Part shown: positions 19,601-32,741 of the stretch, piece by piece | How positions within the stretch are numbered: position 1 is the stretch's first letter | Layout: every line of letters starts with the position of its first letter | Assembly (NCBI GenBank): GCA_905178155.1 | Contig: CAJINV010000013.1 | Span: forward strand, 3,158,158-3,222,157 | DNA from: Amoebophrya sp. A120 | Lineage: Eukaryota; Protista; Dinoflagellata | Length of the DNA stretch: 64,000 nucleotides | Direction of reading: 5' to 3' | Position numbers and translations under genes: made by a program | Notes under the pieces: model-generated | What the model was told of the DNA's origin: nothing | The model's input: the letters and a program-made list of their open reading frames with translations, nothing else | Databases searched by the model: none

Positions 19601-22600
19601 TCGTCACACCCTTCGCGAAGCAGTCACTAAGGACAATCGGGCTCGCCTACAGGGACGTGTCCGCGGGCGAGAGTCCGGATTGGGACGCAGTTTTGAGTGC
19701 GGAAGACGCGTCCAGAATCACCGGACAAGCAGCGGAATGTCCGGTCTTTGAGACAGAGGTAAAGTCCCGGTAAATAACTTGTGTGTGCAGCGCATTTGTG
19801 CAAGTATGGTGATTTGCTGTGTCATGCGAAAAAAAAATGCAAACGCCACGAAATGAAAATACACATGATCAAGTAGATGTACAACATGGACAAACACGAG
19901 TCTGCATGTGTGTCCAGAACTTCTTTACAAATGACAAAACAGCTCACATTCCTTGGCCTGGTCGGTATCGAGGACCCACTTCGTCCCACCGTCGAGCCGG
20001 CGATCCGAAAGTGCAACTCCGCGGGCGTTGACGTCCGCATGGTAACGGGCGATAACATTGACACAGCGGTCGCGATCTCCAAGCAGTGCGGGATTCTGCG
20101 GCCGGGCATCGACATCGATGCCAGCTCCGGCGAAGTTTTGAACAACGCCGCGCTGTCCGGGCCGGAGTTTAGGAAGCGAGTGGTCGATAGCAACGGCAAG
20201 ATCAACCAGGAGGAGTTCGACAAAATCTGGCCGACCTTGAGGGTTCTCGCAAGGTCAAGTCCAACAGATAAATACTTGCTAGTGTCCGGTATCATCGAGT
20301 CTGATCTGTTCAAGAACCGGAAAATTTGCGAGGAGACAAAGATCTACCCGGACCGACAAGTGGTCGCCGTCACGGGCGATGGGACCAACGACGCGCCGGC
20401 ATTGAAGCGCGCGGACGTCGGGTTTGTGATGGGGTTAAGCGGGACGAGCGTCGCAAAAGACGCGGCGGACATTGTCATCACAAACGACGACTTTTCCTCC
20501 ATTGTCGAGGCGTGCAAATGGGGCCGGAACGTGTACGATTGCATCAGCAAATTCTTGCAATTCCAACTGACCGTGAACATCGTCGCGGTGACCCTGGCGT
20601 GCACGGGGTCGTTTGTGGACCGCGAATCACCCCTGCGAGCCGTGCAGATGTTGTGGGTGAACTTGATTATGGACTCGCTAGGGGCTTTGGCGTTGGCAAG
20701 TGAGCCACCAGTGCCAGAACTGCTGGAACGACCACCGTATGGGAGGAACAAACCGTTGCTCAGCTTTCAAATGAAGTACTTTGCTGATTTTTTGTGTGCT
20801 TTGCCTCCGTCATGCGATGCAGCAAGTACCAGAAAACGAAAACCTAAGGCTAGGCTATCTTTGTCATGCGGAAAGTGTATATAGTGAAAGTGAAGGTAGG
20901 AAAAGTGAAGCCATTGCTCGATGCCTGTGCGAAAATTTTGTCAGGTTCAACATGTTTGGGCAAGCCATTTACCAGCTCATTGTCCTCTTTGTACTTCTTT
21001 ACGCCGGTGCCGGAGCCGAGAAGGGCGACAAGAAGCCCGCGGAGGGACAAGCAAGGAGGTTTTTTATGCCATCTGAAGTCGACAACAGCGGAAGCGACTA
21101 CGACGTGTGGCACTGTGACGCCAGGGAATACAAGCAGGAGTACTACCAGAAGGCGTTTCCCACGCAGTCGGCGTCATCACCTCAAACAGACGCCCAAATC
21201 GACGCCGCCCTGGCACCCTATGGCGGGCTCTGCAGCAATTGCGGAGGCTTTCTCGACATTCCAAATGGTACTACATCAGGCTGCAGTTGTTGTAATTGAA
21301 GGTATGGTTTGTGTGATAAGGAGGCAACACGGGCCTAGCGAAGCGGCCCGGGTAGCCGACGCGGGAACACAAAGCGGATTTTTATAAGGAGATACTCCCT
21401 TCCCCACCGGTCGACGTTGTTACGGTCCCGGGAAGACCTAAAACTCGACCCAAAGTAATTCAAGTCAGCTCTCAAGTGAGTTTTTTTTTTTCAAGCGGCC
21501 TGCTGCCGCGCGTTTTTTCCAAAATGACAGTAAAAATGTATTCGCGAATGCGCCCTGCGGTGTGGTCTTCATCTCCTCCTCTCAAAAGTAGTTCCTCACG
21601 TCAAGTTTCAAGTGAAATTTTTTCAAGCGGCCTGCTGCCGCGCTTTTTTTTCAAAATCACAGTAAAAAATGTATTCGCGAATGCGCCCTGCGGCGTGGTC
21701 TTCATCTCCTCCTCTCAAAAGTAGGTCCTCACCTCCTTCAATTCGCCTGAGCGGTCAAAGCAAGTTTCAACTTGTCATACACTCAACATGCCCTGAGGCA
21801 CTGTAGTGGCCCGGCCACCTTTCCTTTCCTCTATTCCCTCTGAGAAAGCAAAGCTGTAGCGATCGCCTGTCTGACACGATCGCGCTTCTACTGAGCCTGC
21901 TGCTATTTCTTCACTTTGGCACCACGGTTGCACTCATCTACTAGTTTCAGATCTTCTTATCGCATGTGCGACAAGGGACAACGAAGAGCCCGAGCCCGAA
22001 AGGTGCCCCGTGGAGGGGCGGCCGTGGTAGGCCTCGCACAGGCCTATGTCCTGGCGCGGCCATCAATCAGGCTTCATTCCCAACATGACGGCGCGCTGAG
22101 CGTCAGTGCGACTGCAAGTACAAACAACCCAACGCACTCGCACCCCAGCGTGAGGAATTCGTCGGCCCGCCGCTGGGGTCAGTTCTTGGACCTGTGTTTT
22201 TTTTCCAACATTGTGTTGATGCTCCTGGGGGCGACGGAACAGAATAGGGCTGTCCTTACTCATGTGGTGTCCTCCCTGAATTTTGTAGACGATTTCACCT
22301 TAGCGGCACTGCAGCTCTCGGGCATAGCGACAGGGCCCGCGTCTACTCACCTGCAGCAAGTTGAAGCTGTTGGAAATAGTGACGGCGTTACTTCGTCCGG
22401 GGCTTCTGCCATGTGAATTTTTGCAAGGGGTTTGCTTTTTCTCCCGGCTCTACAAACTACAAGTTTTTCTAGGCCCGGCCTTCACAAAATATCAACTACT
22501 TACATTTGATAGCTTCAAGTGCACTGGCTTGGCTCTACGCCCGCCGTTGGCCGTCCTATGTCTAGGGTCCCTCACTCTGTGCTGCGGCATGAGTGAGCGT

Positions 22601-25600
22601 ATCAACATAGGGTGGGCGATTTTTCCGCTACACAACGCATATTAGTTCGGGCGCGCGTCGGGCCTGTGCCGGTGCCCGTCCAATAGTTGGCGCCACTATT
22701 TCAAGTGAGGACGAAGACACTGCGTCTATCGGTTGTGATGGGTGGCAGTATTAGTGTGTAGACCTTGTGGGACTGACGCCCAAGCTCTTAACCGTTGCAG
22801 TGTGCATCAGGCTGCAGTTGTTGTAATGACACATCTACCCTGGTAGAACCTTTTCGTGGAGTGACTGGAGGGAGTTTCCCCCCGTCCGTTTTTGTATATG
22901 GGCTGGCAGATCCCTAGAAGCTAATGCCTGGAGTTGTTGGTCTTCCACCCCTCTGAGTGGGGTCGGGGAAGGAGCCAACGCGGACGTAGTCCGCAGGTTT
23001 CGCTGGATAGTTTGCTTTGTGATGGATTCACATCGTTCTCGCGTTCTAATGAATGGTAGCTCATGTGCTCAGAGTGCACCGCAGTGCCATTCCGCCACTG
23101 AGGGCGCTTCCCAGCGGGGAAAGGTGATTTAGGAGGATTGCGTTCTAATGAATGGTAGCTCATGTGCTCAGAGTGCACCGCAGTGCCATTCCGCCACTGA
23201 AGGCGTTTCCCAGCGGGGAAGGGTGATTTAGGACGTTTTCGCTTTAATGGATGGTAGCTCATGTGCTCAGAGTGCACCGCAGTGCCATTCCGCCACTGAG
23301 GGCGCTTCCCAGCGGGGAAGATGGGTGTCAGGATGGTTTTGCGGTTTTTGCAACTAGTAAGTGGATCAGGAGGTGGATGTACTAAGATGCCTACTCATGG
23401 ATATTTCTGTTTTTCGAGCCCGTGGAGATATGGGTTGTTCTCTGTTTTCGCTCCTCATTAGGGCAGGATGTTTCATTCCGAGCTCTGGCCCTCAAGCTCG
23501 GGGTCCTAGATGGGCTGGCTGGAGTTTGTTTTTGTTCGCGCTTCTAGGGAATATGCGGCAGTGCTGGAGAGCATTATGGTGCTGCTCAGGGTGCAAGGCG
23601 GCTTTTGCTCGCCCTTCGATATGTGGCGGGTTTTTCAACTTACTTACTACCTACTACTCCGAGTAAGGGCAGGAGGCTCCGAAGCCTCGTTTGGGAAGCC
23701 CTGTCGGGGACAGATACCTCGCTGTGCTGGTTTTTAGCTTGAGAGCAGCTACTCCCCTGCCGGGTCGCGTCTCTACTCCTTTTTACACCAGAGCGGCTTC
23801 GCTTCGTCCTCGGTCTCAATGGGTCAGTAGTATAGTGCTGCGCGGGGTTGTCAGCGAGTGTACAAAACCTCCAGCCGGGAGCGCATGGGTCGAGTGCTAG
23901 AGGCTTTGCACTTAGGGATACGAGGTGGCGGGGCTCGCCGCAGTTCTATGGGCGATTGTTTTTGCTAGAGTTGGCCCTGTTGACGGCGGTGAGGATACTT
24001 ACTTTGTTTCGGATGCGCGTATAGCTTGCATCCCGTTCTTGGGGGCGCGGAGTCAGTGTCTATTCTATCCTGTCTGTTGGCCGTTTCGATAGATTTTAGG
24101 CTGGGGCCTGGGTCATTTTACACATTGGAAGTTTTCCGCTCAGGGGCCTGTAGTGCTACCCTCTGCTTCGCTTTGTTGATACTGCGGTCTAGTGCATGCC
24201 GTTTCGCGGTGGAGCTTCCCGGTCCTGGGGCACTTCTGTTTTCGGAAGGTTGGCTAGATGCCTCACAGCGCTGGCACTTATCTCGGCGGCTGCCTTTTTC
24301 TTTTACTTTTTCGGATTGGCCTTACAGTCTCATCTGCACCACACCAGGGGAGCTCCGCTCTGTCCTCGGTCTCGCCTTGCTTTGGGAACAGGGGTCGTTT
24401 GGCACTGGCGGTACCCAATCCGTTACCCTTGCGAACTTGTTCCCTGGCTGGGGCTGGTGGTTTGGTGTCTCCTTCGTTCGCCCTCTGTTTTTGTCCATTC
24501 TCCCGCCGCTTGCCGCAATTCCGGCCCGCGGTCTTCTGCTAGTTTGCGCATCGCCATCAGTTTTCTCCGCCCGTGCCGGCGGGCTTTCCCGGGACGGGAA
24601 GTGAGTGGCGTTTTTCTCTTGGCATTGAAGGACTTTCTTTTTCGCAGTTTGGGAGTGGCTTTTGGGCTTGTGTTGTATGTCTTGCCACCTCGCTTGGGCC
24701 GGGTGCTATCTGTTCCCCGGAGGTATCAATCCTTTCTACGTTTTGCGGCTCGCCACGAGGGGACGGCGGTTCGGCGCTTTCATTGCAGTGCTCCTCTTGC
24801 GGGTTTTTGGTCTTAGAGTGTATCGCGTTTTGTGTTTATCTTGGTATCGATGGGCTCCCCCTCAGTGGTTTTCCGTGTCGGCTAGGGGCCGTGTCCGACT
24901 TTTGTGCCTTGCGGGCAGTTGTCTCATCAGGTCCAGGGCGCAGAGCCTTTCGCGCGGGTTTTTGGAGTTTATCAAGAGGACGCTACGTGGGAGTTGGGTG
25001 GATCCCTTCTGGGGAATTGCCTGTTGCTTGCTGCTGGAATGTGGGGGGTTCGAGTGCTTGCTGTTCCCCGGTGGTATCCTTTCTACATTTTGCGGCTCGC
25101 CACGAGAGGGTGGTGGGCCGGCGCTTTTGATGCAGTATATCTTGTGCGGGATTTTGGCCTTAGAGTCCATCGTGGTGCGTGTCTATCTTGGTGTCTATGC
25201 GTTTTCCCTCAGGGGTTTTTCCGTGTCGGCTAGCGGCCGTGTCCGGGTTTCCTCGACATTCCAAATGGTACTACATCAGGCTGCAGTTGTTGTAATTACG
25301 GATGCACCTCGGTGCATCATTTTCGCGTAAGTGACGGAAAGGACGAGACTCCTATGGAAAGGGCTAGCAGATCCCTGGTAAGCTAATGCAAGGCGGCACG
25401 ACTGGACCCGCAATTGAGGCGGGGGTCGTGCCAAGGTTGGTTTTTCTTTCGATTGGCTGGACCCAGTCTAGGTTGACTGGGGGTCGATGTAGGTTTGCCA
25501 CGGCAATGGCCTGAGTTGGCGGCGCGACGACTGGACCTGGTCCTGGTGAGGTGACTGGGGGTCGGGATCGCTCAGATTCTTCGGTGAAAAGGCCAGGCGG

Positions 25601-28600
25601 CCTGTCAGCTTCGTGGAGCAGGGCACTAGGGCTCAAGGACTTGGCATGGCTTGGGCGCGCAGTGACGCCGGTATTGCTATTTATTACCTAGGGCACGGCT
25701 AGGATGGAGCCAGGAGTAGCGTGGTATGGCAGTGCCCGCGCGCACGATATGGCTAGGAGGCAAGGAAGCGCAGGGCTTTTTTACTCTCTACGTAGAGTTG
25801 TTTGTGTCTTACCTCTCCACCCTCACTAGGTCGGACTCGGAAGCACTGTTGGTGCTGGCTAGGATGGGCTTATAACTCTCCCTCCGTGCGGGCTTTGGGT
25901 GCACAGACGGGGAAAGCGAGGAGTTCGCAGGAAAGCGAGAAGTGGGCTTGGCCCATTCTCTCAGCAGCATAAGTGGCGGATGTTGACAGGGGTTACGAAC
26001 GTACTGAAAGGAATGGCTCTGATGACTTGGCTGGCGGAGCGTTTTATCTCTGGCGTGGTGTGACGCCACACGGATTGGCATCGGCATAGGACAGGGCTCG
26101 CAAGGCAACGTAGGAAAAGACGAGACTCGAATAGCTTCGCCCGCTCGGTTTGACATCGCAAACTTGCGCTAGAAGGAGCAATTTTCACAGAGTTCACAGT
26201 CTGGGGCGGGGAAGCAGCGCACGGGGCAGCGCGACGGTACTTGGCATCAACTGCAAACAGCAGCTGATCTGGAAGCGATTGACACCGCGACCCGAGCGCA
26301 CGACGCGCGGGGCGGTAAATCATGCCTGGCAGGGGACACACCTCGGGCAGATTCCGCGTGAACATGCATGCGCGCCGCCACCTGCACCCGCTAGGGGGAC
26401 GGCGCATACTTGCATCAGGCCGAGCCCTCTTTTGAAAGAAGATAGAAGTCGAACGCCTCAGCTCCATGCCCGATCGCTCTAGTTACTTAGCAGGCGCTTG
26501 GATCTCCGCCCTAGGCTTGAAATATTGACTTGATTACGTTCTTAAATTGGCTGCGCTAGTGGCCCGCACTTGAATCATCGAGCCGTGGATCGTTTTACGC
26601 CGTAGATTGCCGGAGAGCGGAAAACAGCCGCGGTAGGCGCGTAGGCCGCTCAACATGATAAAAGTCTCACACATCGCATGCCCTCGGCCATGCGCATCCT
26701 ATTTCCAAACAGCGACCACCTATTTCCGTCTCGCCCATGCAGACATCACTCAGAGCGTTGGTTTTCAGCGCGCCTCTGTTGTCATCTTCATCCATTAGTT
26801 TAGATCTATGATCGCCGCCAACGCTTTTACTTTTCAGCCGGGCGATGGCTCGCAAATTTGCCGCCTAAAAGGCTGCCGATTTTTTTCTAATATTGTGGGG
26901 CCCACATTGTTCCGGCTTGTGGCCCCCCTTGTTTCTTTTCGTCGTGGCCCCGTGAGTCTGGGGCCCCAAGGGTTCTAGAGGTAGTCCGGGCAAGGGTTTT
27001 TTCGCCCGTAGTTTTCGTAGGTTTTGGAAATTGGGGCGCTGGGGATTTTTTTTAATTTTTTTGGCGAAGATTTCCCGCCCCGGTGTCTGCAGGGCCCGTG
27101 GCGCATCGGGGCCCGGGGTTTCCAAGGTTTGCGCCCCTGCGATCTTAGTTTTTGCCCCAGAGGAAAAGCAGCGCGTGCGTTTTCCATTTGTCTCGGGCCG
27201 CATATCAATGGCCCCGGCCCGCCCGGCCGAGGTTCATGAGGGGCGCAGAAGTTGGATTGGGGGGGGTCTAATTTGGGCTCTAATTTCGCGTCTAATTTGT
27301 TTCTAATTCCAGCATAGGGAATGCGGAAGGGTTTGCAATGAAAAAAATTAGCCGTGATTTAGCCAGGAATTTAGGCGCGAAGTTAGTCGCCTGCCTTAGC
27401 ATCGATTTAGGCAAGGAATTAGCCGGGGGCAAGAGGCGCCCCGCCCGGTCTGCTTCCGGCCAGGCGGCTGTTGTTGATCATTTCGCCGGGTGGCTTCCCG
27501 GTTTTTTGTGTGGGCGAATTGCCGCCCCCCCTAATCTTGCACATCGCGCCGGGCCTCCCCTCGGGGTCGCCTCCCTTCTCGGCCATTTTCTCTCTGGATG
27601 GGAAGAGCCCCAGGGCGCTAGGTATTTGGCCGCGAAGTTCTTGGCCCCGTTCGTTTTTGTTGTCCCGCCCCCCCTGATTTTTGCCCGGTGGCCTTCGGGT
27701 TGGGTGTTGTCTTTGCTGGCATTGCCGCCACTTTCTTTTTTTGTTTTCCTTCGCGACATTAGAAAAAATATAGCAAGTTTTAAGCCTTGGAGAATGCCCG
27801 GGGCCGGCTGCCTGATACTTTTTTCCTCCAGTAAGCTGTCTTTTTTTCCTGCTGCGCTTTTATTTTCTAGTTTCTTGAAGACATTGAGATACTTAGCCGC
27901 CACGCACACGATGTCGAAGGAGGATCATGGTTCGGGCGAGCGCGGCCGATTTGCGCCAATTCGCCGGGATGTCATTTACCACCGGCGCACGGGTGCGCAG
28001 AAGGAGCACAGGGAGCCGAACGCTAGGGGAGTTGCGGCGGAGTACATTTGGGCCGGGGATTCGAAGGCCGCCAGTGGCCACNNNNNNNNNNNNNNNNNNN
28101 NNNNNNNNNNNNNNNNNNNNNNNNNNNNNNNNNNNNNNNNNNNNNNNNNNNNNNNNNNNNNNNNNNNNNNNNNNNNNNNNNNNNNNNNNNNNNNNNNNNN
28201 NNNNNNNNNNNNNNNNNNNNNNNNNNNNNNNNNNNNNNNNNNNNNNNNNNNNNNNNNNNNNNNNNNNNNNNNNNNNNNNNNNNNNNNNNNNNNNNNNNNN
28301 NNNNNNNNNNNNNNNNNNNNNNNNNNNNNNNNNNNNNNNNNNNNNNNNNNNNNNNNNNNNNNNNNNNNNNNNNNNNNNNNNNNNNNNNNNNNNNNNNNNN
28401 NNNNNNNNNNNNNNNNNNNNNNNNNNNNNNNNNNNNNNNNNNNNNNNNNNNNNNNNNNNNNNNNNNNNNNNNNNNNNNNNNNNNNNNNTACTTTTTTCCT
28501 CCAGTAAGCTGTCTTTTTTTCCTGCTGCGCTTTTATTTTCTAGTTTCTTGAAGACATTGAGATACTTAGCCGCCACGCACACGATGTCGAAGGAGGATCA

Positions 28601-31600
28601 TGGTTCGGGCGAGCGCGGCCGATTTGCGCCAATTCGCCGGGATGTCATTTACCACCGGCGCACGGGTGCGCAGAAGGAGCACAGGGAGCCGAACGCTAGG
28701 GGAGTTGCGGCGGAGTACATTTGGGCCGGGGATTCGAAGGCCGCCAGTGGCCACATTGTGTCGTGGTTTTTCACCTCGCAGGAGCCGAAGCGCCAGAAGG
28801 AAAGCGAGCGCCATCGTGTTCGCCTGGCGACTGGGGGCTGGTGGCTGATTTCGTGGCATCGGGCGAAATTTTTTCTGGACGAAGTCGTGGGCATCTCGGA
28901 AGACTATACGAACGCCATCGACGTCGCATTTTCTGCGGTGCGGCCAGATGTCGCGCTGCTTCCGACGTCATCACTGCACTGGTCATAGATCTTGGCAGCC
29001 TTAGGGTCGACGTGTCCGATTGGTTTTTTTTTTAGAAGTCCTGCCGACAGGTCTCTTTGTGAAATAGTCATAATGTATATGAATGATAGAAGATTGTGAG
29101 CGGCTTTTTACCGGAGTAGCTGCCGCCGTATTTGTTCCGGCCGATTTCGAAGATGTTCGCCATGGTTATAGCCTGATGGGCCCCAGCCTGCTCCCGCGTT
29201 TGCTTCCTTCCCTGCGCAGTCTTGTTGGTTTGCAGATATCTTGGCAACTTGAAGATCTAAGCCTATGACTTTTGATGTGAAGACTCACATGCGGGGGGCC
29301 CTTGCCCCCCCCCGCGCCCCCCCCCGCCCTTTCGATGTGATGACATTGCGCCTCAATCTGTATGCCTGATTTTTATTTTTGAGATGAAGACTGACATGCG
29401 GGGGGCCCTCGCCCCCCCCCGCGCCCCCCCCGCCCTTTCGATATGATGATATTGCGCCCCGATCTGTATGAGTAGTTTTTAATTCTAAGACTATAACTTC
29501 AAGATCTAAAGTTATGACCATGCGGGGGGCCCTCGCCCCCCCCCGCCCTTTCGATGTGATGATATTGCGCCTCAATCTGTATGAATGATTTTTATTTTTA
29601 AGAGTCTGCGCCCCGATCTGTATGAGTAATTTTTAAGTCTAAGACTGTAACTTCAAGATCTAAATTTATGGCCATGCGGGGGGCCCTCGCCCCCCCCCCC
29701 GCGCCCCCCCCGCCCTTTCGATGTGATGACATTGCGCCTCAATCTGTATGAATGATTTTTATTTTGAAGATGAAGACTTACATGCGGGGGGCCCTCGCCC
29801 CCCCCCCCGCGCCCCCCCCGCCCGGTCGATATGAGGATATTGCGCCCCGATCTGTATGGGTAGTTTCTAGATCTAAGATTATAACTTCAAGATCTAAATT
29901 TATGACTGATGAGATGAAGACTCACATCTTGATGAAGGCGCGCCGATTCAATTATGAAGATTGAGACTATGACTCTGAGAAGATTATGACTTTACTTCTA
30001 AGATAGGATAAGATGACGACTTTGATGATTCCAAGATGAGATAAGAAATTGTGACTTTTGAGATGATTCGATTATGATTTGAGATTAAGACTTGAGATTC
30101 GAATCTTTTGAATGTGAGACTATGTTATGAAGATATCTGAATTTAAATAGTGAATTGAGCTCAAGTTGTGAATTGAACTCAAATGGTGAACTGAACCCAA
30201 ATGGTGGACCGAACTCAAAAGATGCACTGAACTCTTGAACTCTTGAACATTTTGAATTTCTCGCAAGTCTTGCAAAGATCTTGTAGATATGACTATCAAT
30301 ATGACAAGCATGGCAGTGCTCTAGTTCATGGACATTCATCTCGTGGCATCGACCGAATGGCGGAGGAGTCGCCCTTTTTGGCAGGACGCTATTGGGGTAC
30401 GGCTGGGGGGCGGCACTGTGCCGCCAGAAATGGATAGATTGGGCCGAGGATTTGGTTGACATCAGTATGGCTGAGGCCGAGCCGGTAGGTTTTTAGGAAT
30501 CTAAGTCTGGGGCATGGGACCCGGGGCCCCAGACCGATTGCGAGGTTGGCGCTGATGGAGGTAGAGGCTGCGCCCTTGCTAGCAATGTATGGAGGAAGCA
30601 CAAGGGGGAATTCATGGGGGGCTACGGTCTGCATCTCCGGGCATGGTTTGTTTTCCTAGCTTCGGCCAACCTTGTGCAGCGGCGTTTTTCTCTTCCTCAG
30701 GACACTGCCCGGCACAGGTCTTTCGGGGAATTTCTTACTTACCTACCTGCCTCATTTGGGGCAGGGGATGTTGGTGCACTTTTCGCAGGCGCCAGCGCAT
30801 AGCTTGTTGGCCGGTTTCACACGCTGGCGGGGGTTTTTCCACTATAGGTTTCGGCTCGAGGCTGGCTTGAATTCACAATGATTGCGCCCTGCACTGCAGG
30901 TGGCTGAGGTTGGGCTCCGGGTCTGATCTAGAGGTGGTTACCGTCCACCCACCCCCTTTCTTCTCGAGAGTTGTGTCGGATGGACAGTGCAACGAGCGTG
31001 GGGGTGGCGCTGCTCGTTCCTTCGGGCTGTGCAATAGGGGTTTCCCTTCACTCATATTAGCTTCATTTCCGTGTTGGGCATTCGGGCCCAACGCAAGTCG
31101 AAGGGGTGGCTTCTACCCGGGAATTTCATTCTTTGTTCAGGTGTCTCACGTAGGCAGAAGGTAAGTAGGATCAGTCTGGGTTTGACAGCCAGCCGGCCGG
31201 ACTGTAGGCTTGGTGCTCGCTGGATCAGTGCATGGAGGGAAGCTTCCGAGCTCTCCCCCGGACTCGGCATGGGTGTCGATGCTCAACATTGCAGGGTGGG
31301 GCCCATTTCACTGCAGGCGCGGGGCAGCTGTCTCGCTCAGCGAGTTAGTGTTAATCTCCTTGCGGATAGGGTTTTTCGCTGCCTCACTCCTTTTTACGGG
31401 CTGTAGCTACATAGGAAATTGCTCTCTTCGAGAAGCTTGTACGTTTGGGGCCACACGCTGGCCCCAGGGTGTGCCGACTACCCCAGCTCGGGGTAGCGGG
31501 GGGGATGCAGTTTACTACGGGATGGTCGGTTCGGTGCTGCCTGCGGTGCTACGCAGTTTTTGGCAGGTTTTGCCATGAGATGGCTGTGCGCTGGGCGGTC

Positions 31601-32741
31601 TGGTAGTCCCTGCTTTCGGCGGCGGCACTAAAAATGTGGCTTGGGCAATGGTTTCGGATTCTGGCACTAAGCCCAGGGCGCTTGGGCGGCTTTTTGGTTG
31701 GGCGCTGCGCCTACTAGCTTTTTTTCTCGACATTCCAAATGGTACTACATCAGGCTGCAGTTGTTGTAATTGAACTACAAAAATTTTCGATGCTGCTCTC
31801 GCTTGTTAGCTTCCTCTGTGTACGTGTGGACATCAACATGTGTAAAAGAAAAGCTTACCTTAGTTTGAACCAACTTTCCCCCCCCCAGGTCGCGGCCTGG
31901 ACTTCAAGGGTCCCCCGTGCCAACACTACACGATTATTTTCAACGCGTTCGTGATGATGCAGCTTTTCAACTGGATCAACTGCCGGAAGATTTACCACGA
32001 GTTCAACGTTTTCAGCGGTATCCAGGACAACAAAACCTTCATCGGGATTTGGCTGATCTGCTTCACGATCCAGTGCCTCCTCGTGGAGGGCGGCGCCATC
32101 GGCAAGTCCGGCATCGACCTCGCCTGCGACGCCCACAACCGGGCGTTCTCCGCAACGCACCTCTCGGGGTCCCAGTGGGTGCTCTGCCTCGTCTGCGGGG
32201 TCTTCTCCCTGGCCTGGCAGTGGGTTTTGATCTTGATCGCGCGGAAGTTCTTCCCAGATATGGAAAAGATCGACGTGTACGTATCCTGAGTAAAAACGTC
32301 CCCACCCCATAGTCAAGATGGGAAATCTGCTACATAAATCGCTAAGCTATGGCTGTCGCGCATGACAAATTTGTTCGGCTCGCAATGTAGTTGTGTTTAG
32401 CTAGTGCAGCAGCATAACAGAGTCAGTCTGTCAAGCTGAGTCGAGCATGACAAATCTCAAACCACCACTAGAAAACGCCTCTCATGGGTCTCCGCATGGG
32501 AAACATTTCAAGCATGCAGATTTGCATGATAGTTCTGGGATGGGGACGTTTTTACACAGGATAGCACGCACTAGCCGGGCACTGGGAAGACGGGGAGGAG
32601 GAGAAGGAGGGGGACGAGAAAAACGACGAAAAGCTGTTTGAGTCCCAGCATAACAAAATCCCCGCGAACAACTCCGATGCGAAGTACACCAAAGGCGTGC
32701 ACCCCAACACGCTCGCGACCGAGATGGAGTCGCCGGTGTAA
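16643..32741 (+). CDS. PMCA: Plasma-membrane-type Ca2+-transporting P2B ATPase (PMCA), 11 exons, with a ~10.6-kb expanded intron 21268-31888
   Basis: [64 protein letters not shown]. Inferred introns: introner 16961-17265, 17322-17486, 17856-18005, ~18091-18321, 18504-18651, introner 18743-19004, 19759-19942, 20776-20944, 21268-31888, introner 32282-32563. Stop at 32739-32741. Confidence 0.92.
16961..17265. mobile_element. Introner, 305 bp
   Basis: TIRs tattacagtgaaaaatgcccccacccc / ggggtggggggcacttttcactgtaata; TSD accca (16956-16960, 17266-17270); removal gives [11 protein letters not shown]. Confidence 0.92.
18743..19004. mobile_element. Introner, 262-bp family, copy 1 (inverted relative to copies 2 and 3)
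   Basis: TIR core aaaatgtctgggtctggaa; TSD ccgca (18738-18742, 19005-19009); removal gives [13 protein letters not shown]. Confidence 0.95.
21473..21724. repeat. Two-copy tandem repeat (~135-bp period)
   Basis: caagtga..ttttcaagcggcctgctgccgcg...ctcaaaagtag at ~21473-21591 and ~21609-21724. Confidence 0.85.
23041..23320. repeat. 99-bp tandem repeat, ~2.8 copies
   Basis: Unit gcgttctaatgaatggtagctcatgtgctcagagtgcaccgcagtgccattccgccactg... at 23041, 23140 and ~23239. Confidence 0.92.
24710..25245. repeat. Diverged ~190-bp direct repeat pair
   Basis: ctgttccccgg..ggtatc..tttctac.ttttgcggctcgccacgag...ttttccgtgtcggctag.ggccgtgtccg at ~24710-24897 and ~25061-25245. Confidence 0.8.
28082..28489. 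other. Assembly gap (N run) with overlapping flanks
   Basis: 28490-28754 repeats 27817-28081, typical of unmerged overlapping contig ends. Confidence 0.9.
29286..29910. repeat. Compound minisatellite with G/C homopolymer runs, 5 cores
   Basis: Recurrent catgcggggggccctcgcccccccc(gcgccccccc)gccctttcgatgtgatga.attgcgcc.c.atctgtatg with two alternating AT-rich spacers; decays into gatga/atgact low complexity to ~30300. Confidence 0.88.
32282..32563. mobile_element. Introner, 282 bp
   Basis: TIRs tatcctgagtaaaaacgtccccacccca / tgggatggggacgtttttacacaggata; TSD gtacg (32277-32281) vs gcacg (32564-32568), one mismatch; removal opens the acidic C-terminal tail of PMCA. Confidence 0.88.

Follow-up and report, generated by a model that had tools for sequence, protein, structure and literature searches.

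A hairpin-bearing end module shared by non-coding elements in a Ca-ATPase intron of Amoebophrya sp. A120 suggests retroposition from a structured 3′ tail

In target-primed reverse transcription, the specific and reproducible cut in the target is the priming nick, which lies beside the 3′ end of the RNA. Several element groups offer points of comparison for insertions that end in a conserved structure. In the ingi/RIME and L1Tc/NARTc pairs of trypanosomatids, a short non-autonomous form consists of the two ends of a long coding form, and a conserved 5′ signature spans subfamilies; these elements have A-rich tails and duplications of ~12 bp. Penelope-like elements form partial tandems, are truncated at the 5′ end, and make variable, often long duplications at A/T-rich targets. 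Helitron and Helentron elements carry a hairpin just inside one end, keep conserved ends around variable non-coding cargo, and occur in tandem. In R2, the reverse transcriptase (RT) recognises a structured 3′ untranslated region and not a poly(A) tail, untemplated bases are found at the 3′ junction, end-to-end template jumps produce tandems, and complete insertions come with little or no duplication (PMC11194090, PMC10499050). The ‘stringent’ pairs of long and short interspersed nuclear elements (LINEs and SINEs), such as eel UnaL2/UnaSINE1, have a conserved stem-loop at the very 3′ end without poly(A), a tail common to otherwise unrelated elements and placed directly at the integration junction (PMC5135761, PMC3747384). 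Here we analyse a 64,000-nt stretch of the dinoflagellate Amoebophrya sp. A120 (the window; contig CAJINV010000013.1, positions 3,158,158 to 3,222,157), in which three inserted modules, A, B and C, are stacked within an intron of a PMCA-type Ca-ATPase gene, and B and C share a structured terminus. We document the anatomy, copy number, junction rules and conservation pattern of this terminus, and read it, with a probability of about 0.6, as a module at the 3′ end of non-autonomous, minus-sense retroposons whose insertion proceeds by target-primed reverse transcription.

On the best-supported reading, modules B and C belong to two subfamilies within a single superfamily of non-coding, non-autonomous retroposons. 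The superfamily was previously unclassified, but the kind of element would be one already known, and no new kind of RNA device would be involved. The likeness to LINE/SINE tails is close in position and in the lack of poly(A), but no LINE with this tail was found in 12 RT loci (LINE 3′ ends left out), and the module is longer, with three hairpins and an invariant 29-nt box in ~150 nt. Unlike SINEs, its carriers reach up to 7 kb, have no tRNA, 5S or 7SL head, and are flanked by much longer duplications. In contrast to the trypanosomatid elements, even the long forms are non-coding. R2 is specific for ribosomal DNA and encodes its own protein, whereas the target here is only TAAN and cut-short copies are bounded by 14-59-nt duplications. 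Compared with Penelope-like elements, there is no hammerhead ribozyme in the tail (Rfam, E≤5) and no RT or GIY-YIG open reading frame (ORF) in or near the units, although the genome holds six GIY-YIG matches. Helitron and Helentron elements differ in duplications, truncation polarity, end sequences and their link to Rep/helicase ORFs, a link that was not found here. A constant end with variable truncation, variable target duplications and a nick-site consensus are as expected of a non-LTR (long terminal repeat) retroposon; the unusual traits are the very long duplications confined to cut-short copies, the reuse of one nick, and the long non-coding forms.

The end module of B (B type) occupies 22828-22978 on the minus strand and scores 85 bits against covariance model R1, which was built on 32 distinct copies. 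Its parts are a first hairpin (H1, 22834-22847), TTTTCG (22851-22856), AGTGAC (22860-22865), a second hairpin (H2, 22867-22883), the 29-nt box (22900-22927) and a third hairpin (H3, 22937-22978). The C-type module (25297-25432, minus strand, 106 bits) has the same order: H1 at 25301-25318, TTTTCG at 25320-25325, AGTGAC at 25330-25335, H2 at 25340-25353, the box at 25361-25389 and H3 at 25395-25432. The preliminary description, made by eye, had read H1 as tctacc-ct-ggtaga in B and gatgcacc-tc-ggtgcatc in C, followed by the two short motifs and a 26/29-identical block; all of these were found where it had placed them, the blocks aligning with one gap. Its statement that B and C share nothing else also stands, the 29-nt block being the sole BLAST match between them, as does the absence of the terminus from module A, which gives no R1 match and has nothing in common with B or C by BLAST. 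The second, variable hairpin that it proposed holds in part: H2 is convincing in B-type copies and weak or absent in several C-type copies. It had overlooked H3, a larger hairpin that follows the block in all subfamilies as a two-part stem; the stem sequence takes at least five unrelated versions among the subfamilies, always at one place. H3 is given by description only, since the MAFFT alignment is out of register where subfamilies have longer inner stems.

H1 lies at a constant 4-6 nt from the end, though its sequence is not the same in all types. In 22 cells, two of its pairs have changed on both sides of the stem. The paired share of cells is 93%, against 39-54% for slid partners; the observed value was reached in 0 of 500 shuffles. 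Within the C type there is one more compensated change, from GCACC/GGTGC to GCCCC/GGCGC. The box, GGGCT-R-GCA-R-ATCCCT..AAGC, is nearly invariant, and its conservation is therefore uninformative on pairing.

The proposal of a conserved recognition structure had been made to depend on further genomic copies and on their lying at insertion junctions, besides the covariation seen in H1. In the assembly that holds the window (115.5 Mb, 401 contigs), the 21-22-nt block core was counted 40 times (reversed control, 0), and in the window an 18-nt block pattern occurs twice where 0.1 is expected. Model R1 finds at least 60 genomic copies at E≤0.01, a lower bound, as 150 of 25,711 first-look candidates were scored. 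Together, these counts show that the module is not a product of chance. The 104 nt after target copy 3 (the repeat that precedes module C) give 30 genomic BLAST matches, most of them starting at query base 1-5, and in all copies similarity begins abruptly, at GACAC.. in the B type or TACGG.. in the C type and its relatives, while the sequence before the terminus is unrelated between loci. The terminus thus lies at the insertion junction. The pattern TTTTCG-N3-4-AGWGAY occurs at chance level genome-wide and is of no use for finding diverged tails. A metagenome scan for the block gave 0 matches.

At the opposite side, the copies are far less uniform. B-type matches start at query position 125-132 and stop anywhere from 295 to 1790, while three B-type copies extend to a common far end ~6 kb away. 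This far end is kept across subfamilies as ...GGATA..AGGAACG-NNN-CGAAA, a motif with 105 genomic occurrences (control, 67), mostly as a few recurring variants. A matching right-end motif was found within 12 kb downstream of 22 of the 60 termini, in every case within 7.4 kb, and was absent from that interval for the other 38. Complete forms are either short (340-408 nt) or long (6,045-6,961 nt). Common to all forms are two end modules, one of ~130 nt and an opposite one of ~150-230 nt. Head-to-tail junctions (..CGAAA|TACGG), in which a complete far end directly abuts the next terminus, are common. On the minus strand the far end begins with TTTTCG (L065:8866-8895), and the terminus has CGAAAA at a distance of ~25 nt from the opposite end. 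The two element ends are complementary over these 6-7 nt in all subfamilies, a conserved feature that could form a panhandle or represent a repeated protein-binding site. A young subfamily comprises nine termini with identical model scores, and at two or more loci shows a 6,961-nt unit followed directly by a 371-nt short unit (G000:C1:7290891-7298222 (-), C5:3594600-3601931 (-), C4:224182-231142 (+), C16:62517-62902 (+)); no RT match was found inside its units.

The junctions carry the argument for direction. In 35 aligned junctions, the four bases before the terminus are T in 31, A in 30, A in 23 and then any base (TAAN), and this consensus is found at the terminus junction only. It is present in both repeat copies, including the downstream duplicate, and so belongs to the target. 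At ten other loci, eleven cut-short copies are flanked by direct repeats of the upstream flank, with exact duplication lengths of 14, 15, 17, 29, 30, 41, 41, 51, 56 and 59 nt; several are longer when one or two mismatches are allowed, and one of the ten loci has three copies. The window adds duplications of 23, 43 and 48 nt. Every duplication is anchored at the terminus, with 0-2 extra bases between, while its other edge varies; the cut at the terminus is reused exactly in stacks. At the other junction, there is microhomology in B (end TTYCT, target TTTCT) and in C (a run of T at the end). Because the sole target consensus and the reused cut lie at the terminus, and because truncation runs from the opposite end, the terminus most probably corresponds to the 3′ end of a minus-strand RNA. 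The presence of duplications in cut-short but not in complete copies suggests that the 5′ end is joined in two different ways. Among the copies that retain a complete far end are L065:2850-8895, L066 (reverse strand), L012:1501-1864, L016 and L024:1024-1431. One B-type copy (L047:2500-2611) is inserted amid repeated GCCATTTTGG motifs that resemble the dinoflagellate spliced leader core, and these lie inside its 51-nt duplication and just ahead of it.

From these features we infer an RNA intermediate, its strand, recognition of the module by an RT and a set of joining steps. A trans-acting endonuclease/RT would nick the plus strand after TAAN, which here is ...GTTGTAAT|, position +5 of a 123-nt intron. 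The RT would position the RNA 3′ end through the conserved module. Counted inward from that end of the RNA, the module would comprise first a hairpin at 4-6 nt, then CGAAAA and GTCACT, and beyond these a variable hairpin, the invariant box and the stem in two parts. Copying would start from the nick, sometimes after 0-2 untemplated bases. After an early stop, the end of the complementary DNA (cDNA) would join the upstream target by microhomology and leave a 14-59-nt duplication with the nick as its fixed edge. Copying to the RNA 5′ end would lead to a different join without clear duplication, or the RT might jump to another RNA and give a head-to-tail tandem. The stack of A, B and C would then represent three events, or one event with repeated re-initiation, at the same nick. 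The suggestion in the preliminary description of a recognition structure forming the 3′ tail of a minus-strand retro-transcript is thus the best supported of its options, fitting junctions, truncation and hairpins, although neither an RNA intermediate nor an RT partner with this tail was found; its ribozyme option gained no support from Rfam, and nothing in the evidence gathered favours its guide-RNA scaffold.

In the window, the ‘target’ that precedes each module is the end of a PMCA exon together with its 5′ splice site. Modules B and C sit within the second of two tandem PMCA-type Ca-ATPase genes. The upstream exon is an open frame ending at 21291 (20781-21291, plus strand) and aligns to residues 316-328 of the upstream paralogue; the next exon starts at 31889 (plus strand), with bases 31891-32244 aligning to paralogue residues 338-459 (E 3e-22). 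Each of the two was compared with the paralogue separately. As exon alignments are found on both sides, 21292-31888 is all one intron. The native GT-AG intron of 123 nt can be read at 31766-31888 on the plus strand (GTAAT at 31766, AG at 31888), and has grown to 10.6 kb. Within it lie three extra copies of the exon end and GTAAT donor, their repeats beginning at 22805, 25254 and 31723, and of the four donor copies the first alone adjoins the PMCA exon. The 20-nt target core occurs four times genome-wide, all four inside the window. All three modules were inserted after the GTAAT of the target, at intron position +5.

Target copy 1 (21249-21296, plus strand) contains the last 43 nt of the exon and the splice site GTAAT at 21292-21296. 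Module A (21297-22804, minus strand) follows, beginning with two extra bases, TG; next come the anchored end of another repeat family (~21299-21560) and 1.25 kb that is unmatched. It has 12 other genomic matches, most beginning at query base 100 (window 21299). Its inner 1.25 kb (21561-22804) has no second match anywhere in the genome; it may derive from a cellular RNA as a diverged retrocopy, or have been picked up by template switching. Target copy 2 (22805-22827, 23 nt, plus strand) is the duplication from module A. Module B (22828-25253, minus strand) is a B-type element with its right end cut short, other copies running on past 25253. It lacks ~3.1 kb of internal sequence relative to 6,046-nt full-length copies, as its matches at query positions 129-1790 and 1766-2554 lie ~3 kb apart at other loci. 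Target copy 3 (25254-25296, 43 nt, plus strand) is the duplication from module B and is preceded by the 5-nt microhomology TTCCT (25249-25253). Module C (25297-31722, minus strand) is composite, with a C-type element from 25297 to ~26112, a second repeat (26120-30300) into which a 982-bp element is nested (26834-27815) and which is also broken by an assembly gap, and element-like sequence to 31722. Target copy 4 (31723-31770, 48 nt, plus strand) is the duplication from module C and is still attached to the native intron.

The layout of the window is obtained exactly if C was inserted first, B next and A last, each time into the target copy nearest the exon. This order requires that the TG at 21297-21298 represents two untemplated bases, as at L020 and L049. 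Stacks with a repeated flank are also seen at L069, where three 30-nt flank copies surround two modules, and at L024; at L069, the same stepwise order would work with two nicks that lie 7 nt apart. The layout of the window is also explained by a single event in which copying was re-initiated at the nick, and this would account for the identity of the four target copies as well. A bolder form of this reading gives the end module a role beyond that of a start site. The RT, after a premature stop, would switch to the uncut bottom strand of the target, copy back to the nick and restart on another RNA with a suitable tail, so that the A-B-C stack and the three-copy array at L069 would each have been written in one event. 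In a related version, the machinery is drawn to a resident terminus that lies at the nick, and elements home to the 3′ boundary of earlier insertions. We put this bolder form forward as a doubtful possibility, well short of an even chance.

Neither the elements nor their surroundings offer an obvious source of enzymes. The 6-kb B element has no open frame longer than ~195 codons, by estimate near chance for its composition, and its plus strand contains only 13.6% A. A tblastn search with ten RT/Helitron ORFs of the genome gave no matches in any of the terminus loci or the window. Genome-wide, there were 106 RT, 7 Helitron-like and 6 GIY-YIG matches, whose positions were cross-checked against the 60 termini and, for RT, also against ~100 right ends. 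Only four matches lie within 40 kb of a terminus, all of them RT, at 10.7-24.8 kb and on the wrong strand or side, and no RT match lies within 15 kb of any listed right end. The RT loci include one APE-type LINE and several that combine RT with RNase H; candidate machines are thus present in the genome, and none is linked to this tail. On the RNA side, a search of the terminus against 4,227 Rfam families, among them hammerhead, HDV-like, twister, pistol and hatchet, gave no match at E≤5. The head of a classical SINE, derived from tRNA, 5S or 7SL and carrying a Pol III promoter, was not found: ARAGORN gave no tRNA in six loci with short forms, and Rfam returned one chance-level small nucleolar RNA match only.

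A number of observations weigh against retroposition from a minus-sense RNA tail. No RT, Helitron-like or GIY-YIG match was found in a copy or fittingly placed beside one, and model R1 found nothing in the 12 RT loci, a set without LINE 3′ ends. Three RNA runs gave no reads on the stretch; a fourth run consists of low-depth unstranded contigs, possibly of DNA. No duplication was detectable in six of the seven copies whose right end is complete, so that a second joining pathway is needed. Module A used the same nick without the terminus, which means that the tail is not needed by the machinery at this site and may serve template choice for this superfamily only. As for the fold, H1 covariation mostly reflects the split between B and C and thus few independent events. 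Folding energy is weak evidence, with a mean z-score of about -1 on both strands; the C copy reaches about -2, whereas the B copy, at +0.5 to +1, is no better than shuffles. Neither G-U pairs nor folding tell the strand.

This last point bears directly on the reverse orientation, in which the RNA would be the plus strand and the terminus its 5′ leader, acting as a promoter, a protein-binding site or a processing site. The RT would then start at variable internal or premature 3′ ends and always reach the 5′ end. The plus strand does fold more stably (mean -49 versus -40 kcal/mol) and has 215 G-U pairs against 94, with several H3 variants forming G-U pairs where the minus strand has A-C mismatches. 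The complete right end closes in a short A run, ..CGAAA(A), and the extra bases at the left junction and the microhomology at the right one fit this orientation as well. Once composition is controlled, however, the z-scores are equal (-0.99 versus -1.02); there is no poly(A) tail, and the conserved 3′ end would go unused in most insertions, namely the 38 of 60 that lack the right-end motif within 12 kb downstream. A further objection is that TAAN, the sole target consensus, lies at the terminus junction and is reused exactly in stacks, as the mark of a priming nick would be. We therefore regard the reverse orientation as unlikely. We think it more improbable still that the terminus is the hairpin-bearing end of a Helitron- or Helentron-like rolling-circle transposon with conserved ends and variable cargo. 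That idea draws on the hairpin close to one end, the conservation of both ends around non-coding cargo, the tandem arrays, the complete copies without clear duplication, the inverted recurrence of TTTTCG just inside the other end, and the existence of Rep/helicase ORFs in the genome. But rolling-circle insertion does not make the eleven cut-short copies with their 14-59-nt duplications, extra bases and microhomology. The ends read TTTCG... and ...GTGTC or CCGTA, not TC...CTRR; the constant end here is the hairpin end, while Helitron read-through generally varies the hairpin (3′) end; and no terminus lies near any of the 7 Helitron-like matches, nor does R1 find one in the 10-kb Helitron-like locus L082.

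Catalytic or guiding RNA was the other option to be weighed: a self-cleaving ribozyme could make the precise element end, or a nuclease guide scaffold could read into the flank and cause the same target to be cut again. In favour, the element end is precise, the structured, conserved module adjoins target sequence directly, the same nucleotide was used at least three times here with similar stacks elsewhere, and later insertions all went into the target copy beside a resident terminus. Module A, however, lies at the same site without the module, the Rfam search was negative for the terminus, and an ordinary endonuclease with target-primed reverse transcription accounts for TAAN and for the variable duplications. 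No nuclease gene is linked to any copy, though no search was aimed at TnpB/Fanzor-type genes; for a scaffold of that type, the elements are non-coding and their duplications argue against that mode of movement. Such an RNA thus seems very improbable to us. The faintest chance attaches to a small cellular RNA gene, of the spliced-leader or small nuclear RNA (snRNA) kind, or its retrocopies fused to other sequences. The U-rich AUUUUCG between the hairpins loosely recalls an Sm site, and the sequence just upstream in the window ends in a GTAAT splice donor. This donor is part of the PMCA intron, there is no Rfam or tRNA match, the upstream flank is different at every locus and copies are collinear for kilobases past the terminus; flank diversity and collinearity, with the origin of GTAAT, effectively refute such a gene.

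If the terminus is a retroposon tail, the family bears on several questions. The Amoebophrya A120 genome consists of 23.8% repeats, mostly unclassified, with both LTR and non-LTR retroelements present (PMC7789003), and the family described here classifies part of that fraction. What looked like an RNA device becomes a testable cis-element comprising H1, CGAAAA, GTCACT, the 29-nt box and H3, useful for asking how, in dinoflagellates, an RT can select its template in the absence of a poly(A) tail. The contrast between complete copies (no duplication) and cut-short copies (14-59 nt) gives a handle on second-strand joining. At the host gene, the family shows how an intron of 123 nt can reach 10.6 kb, with three extra copies of its own 5′ splice site, while the coding sequence stays untouched.

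A few further features of the modules and their neighbourhood were recorded. Internal repeats are present in module B (23041-23337 and 24729-25219): a tandem array of three 99-nt units, 83-95% identical to the first of them, and a ~347-nt sequence that occurs twice, with 78% identity. Both are also found in full-length copies. In module C, the nested 982-bp element is matched at 87-96% identity by at least 12 copies at other places in the genome, and the repeat that hosts it (26120-26834 and 27816-30300) is 99-100% identical to G000:C1:6114885-6117403. The N run at ~28082-28488 lies between two 100% identical 266-nt stretches (27816-28081 and 28489-28754), and looks like an assembly or scaffolding artefact. 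A ~282-bp element lies just past the next PMCA exon, at window positions 32282-32563. It is bounded by terminal inverted repeats of 28 nt that are 93% complementary, has dozens of copies in the genome (82-89% identity) and looks like one of the introners or miniature inverted-repeat transposable elements (MITEs) described for this genome.

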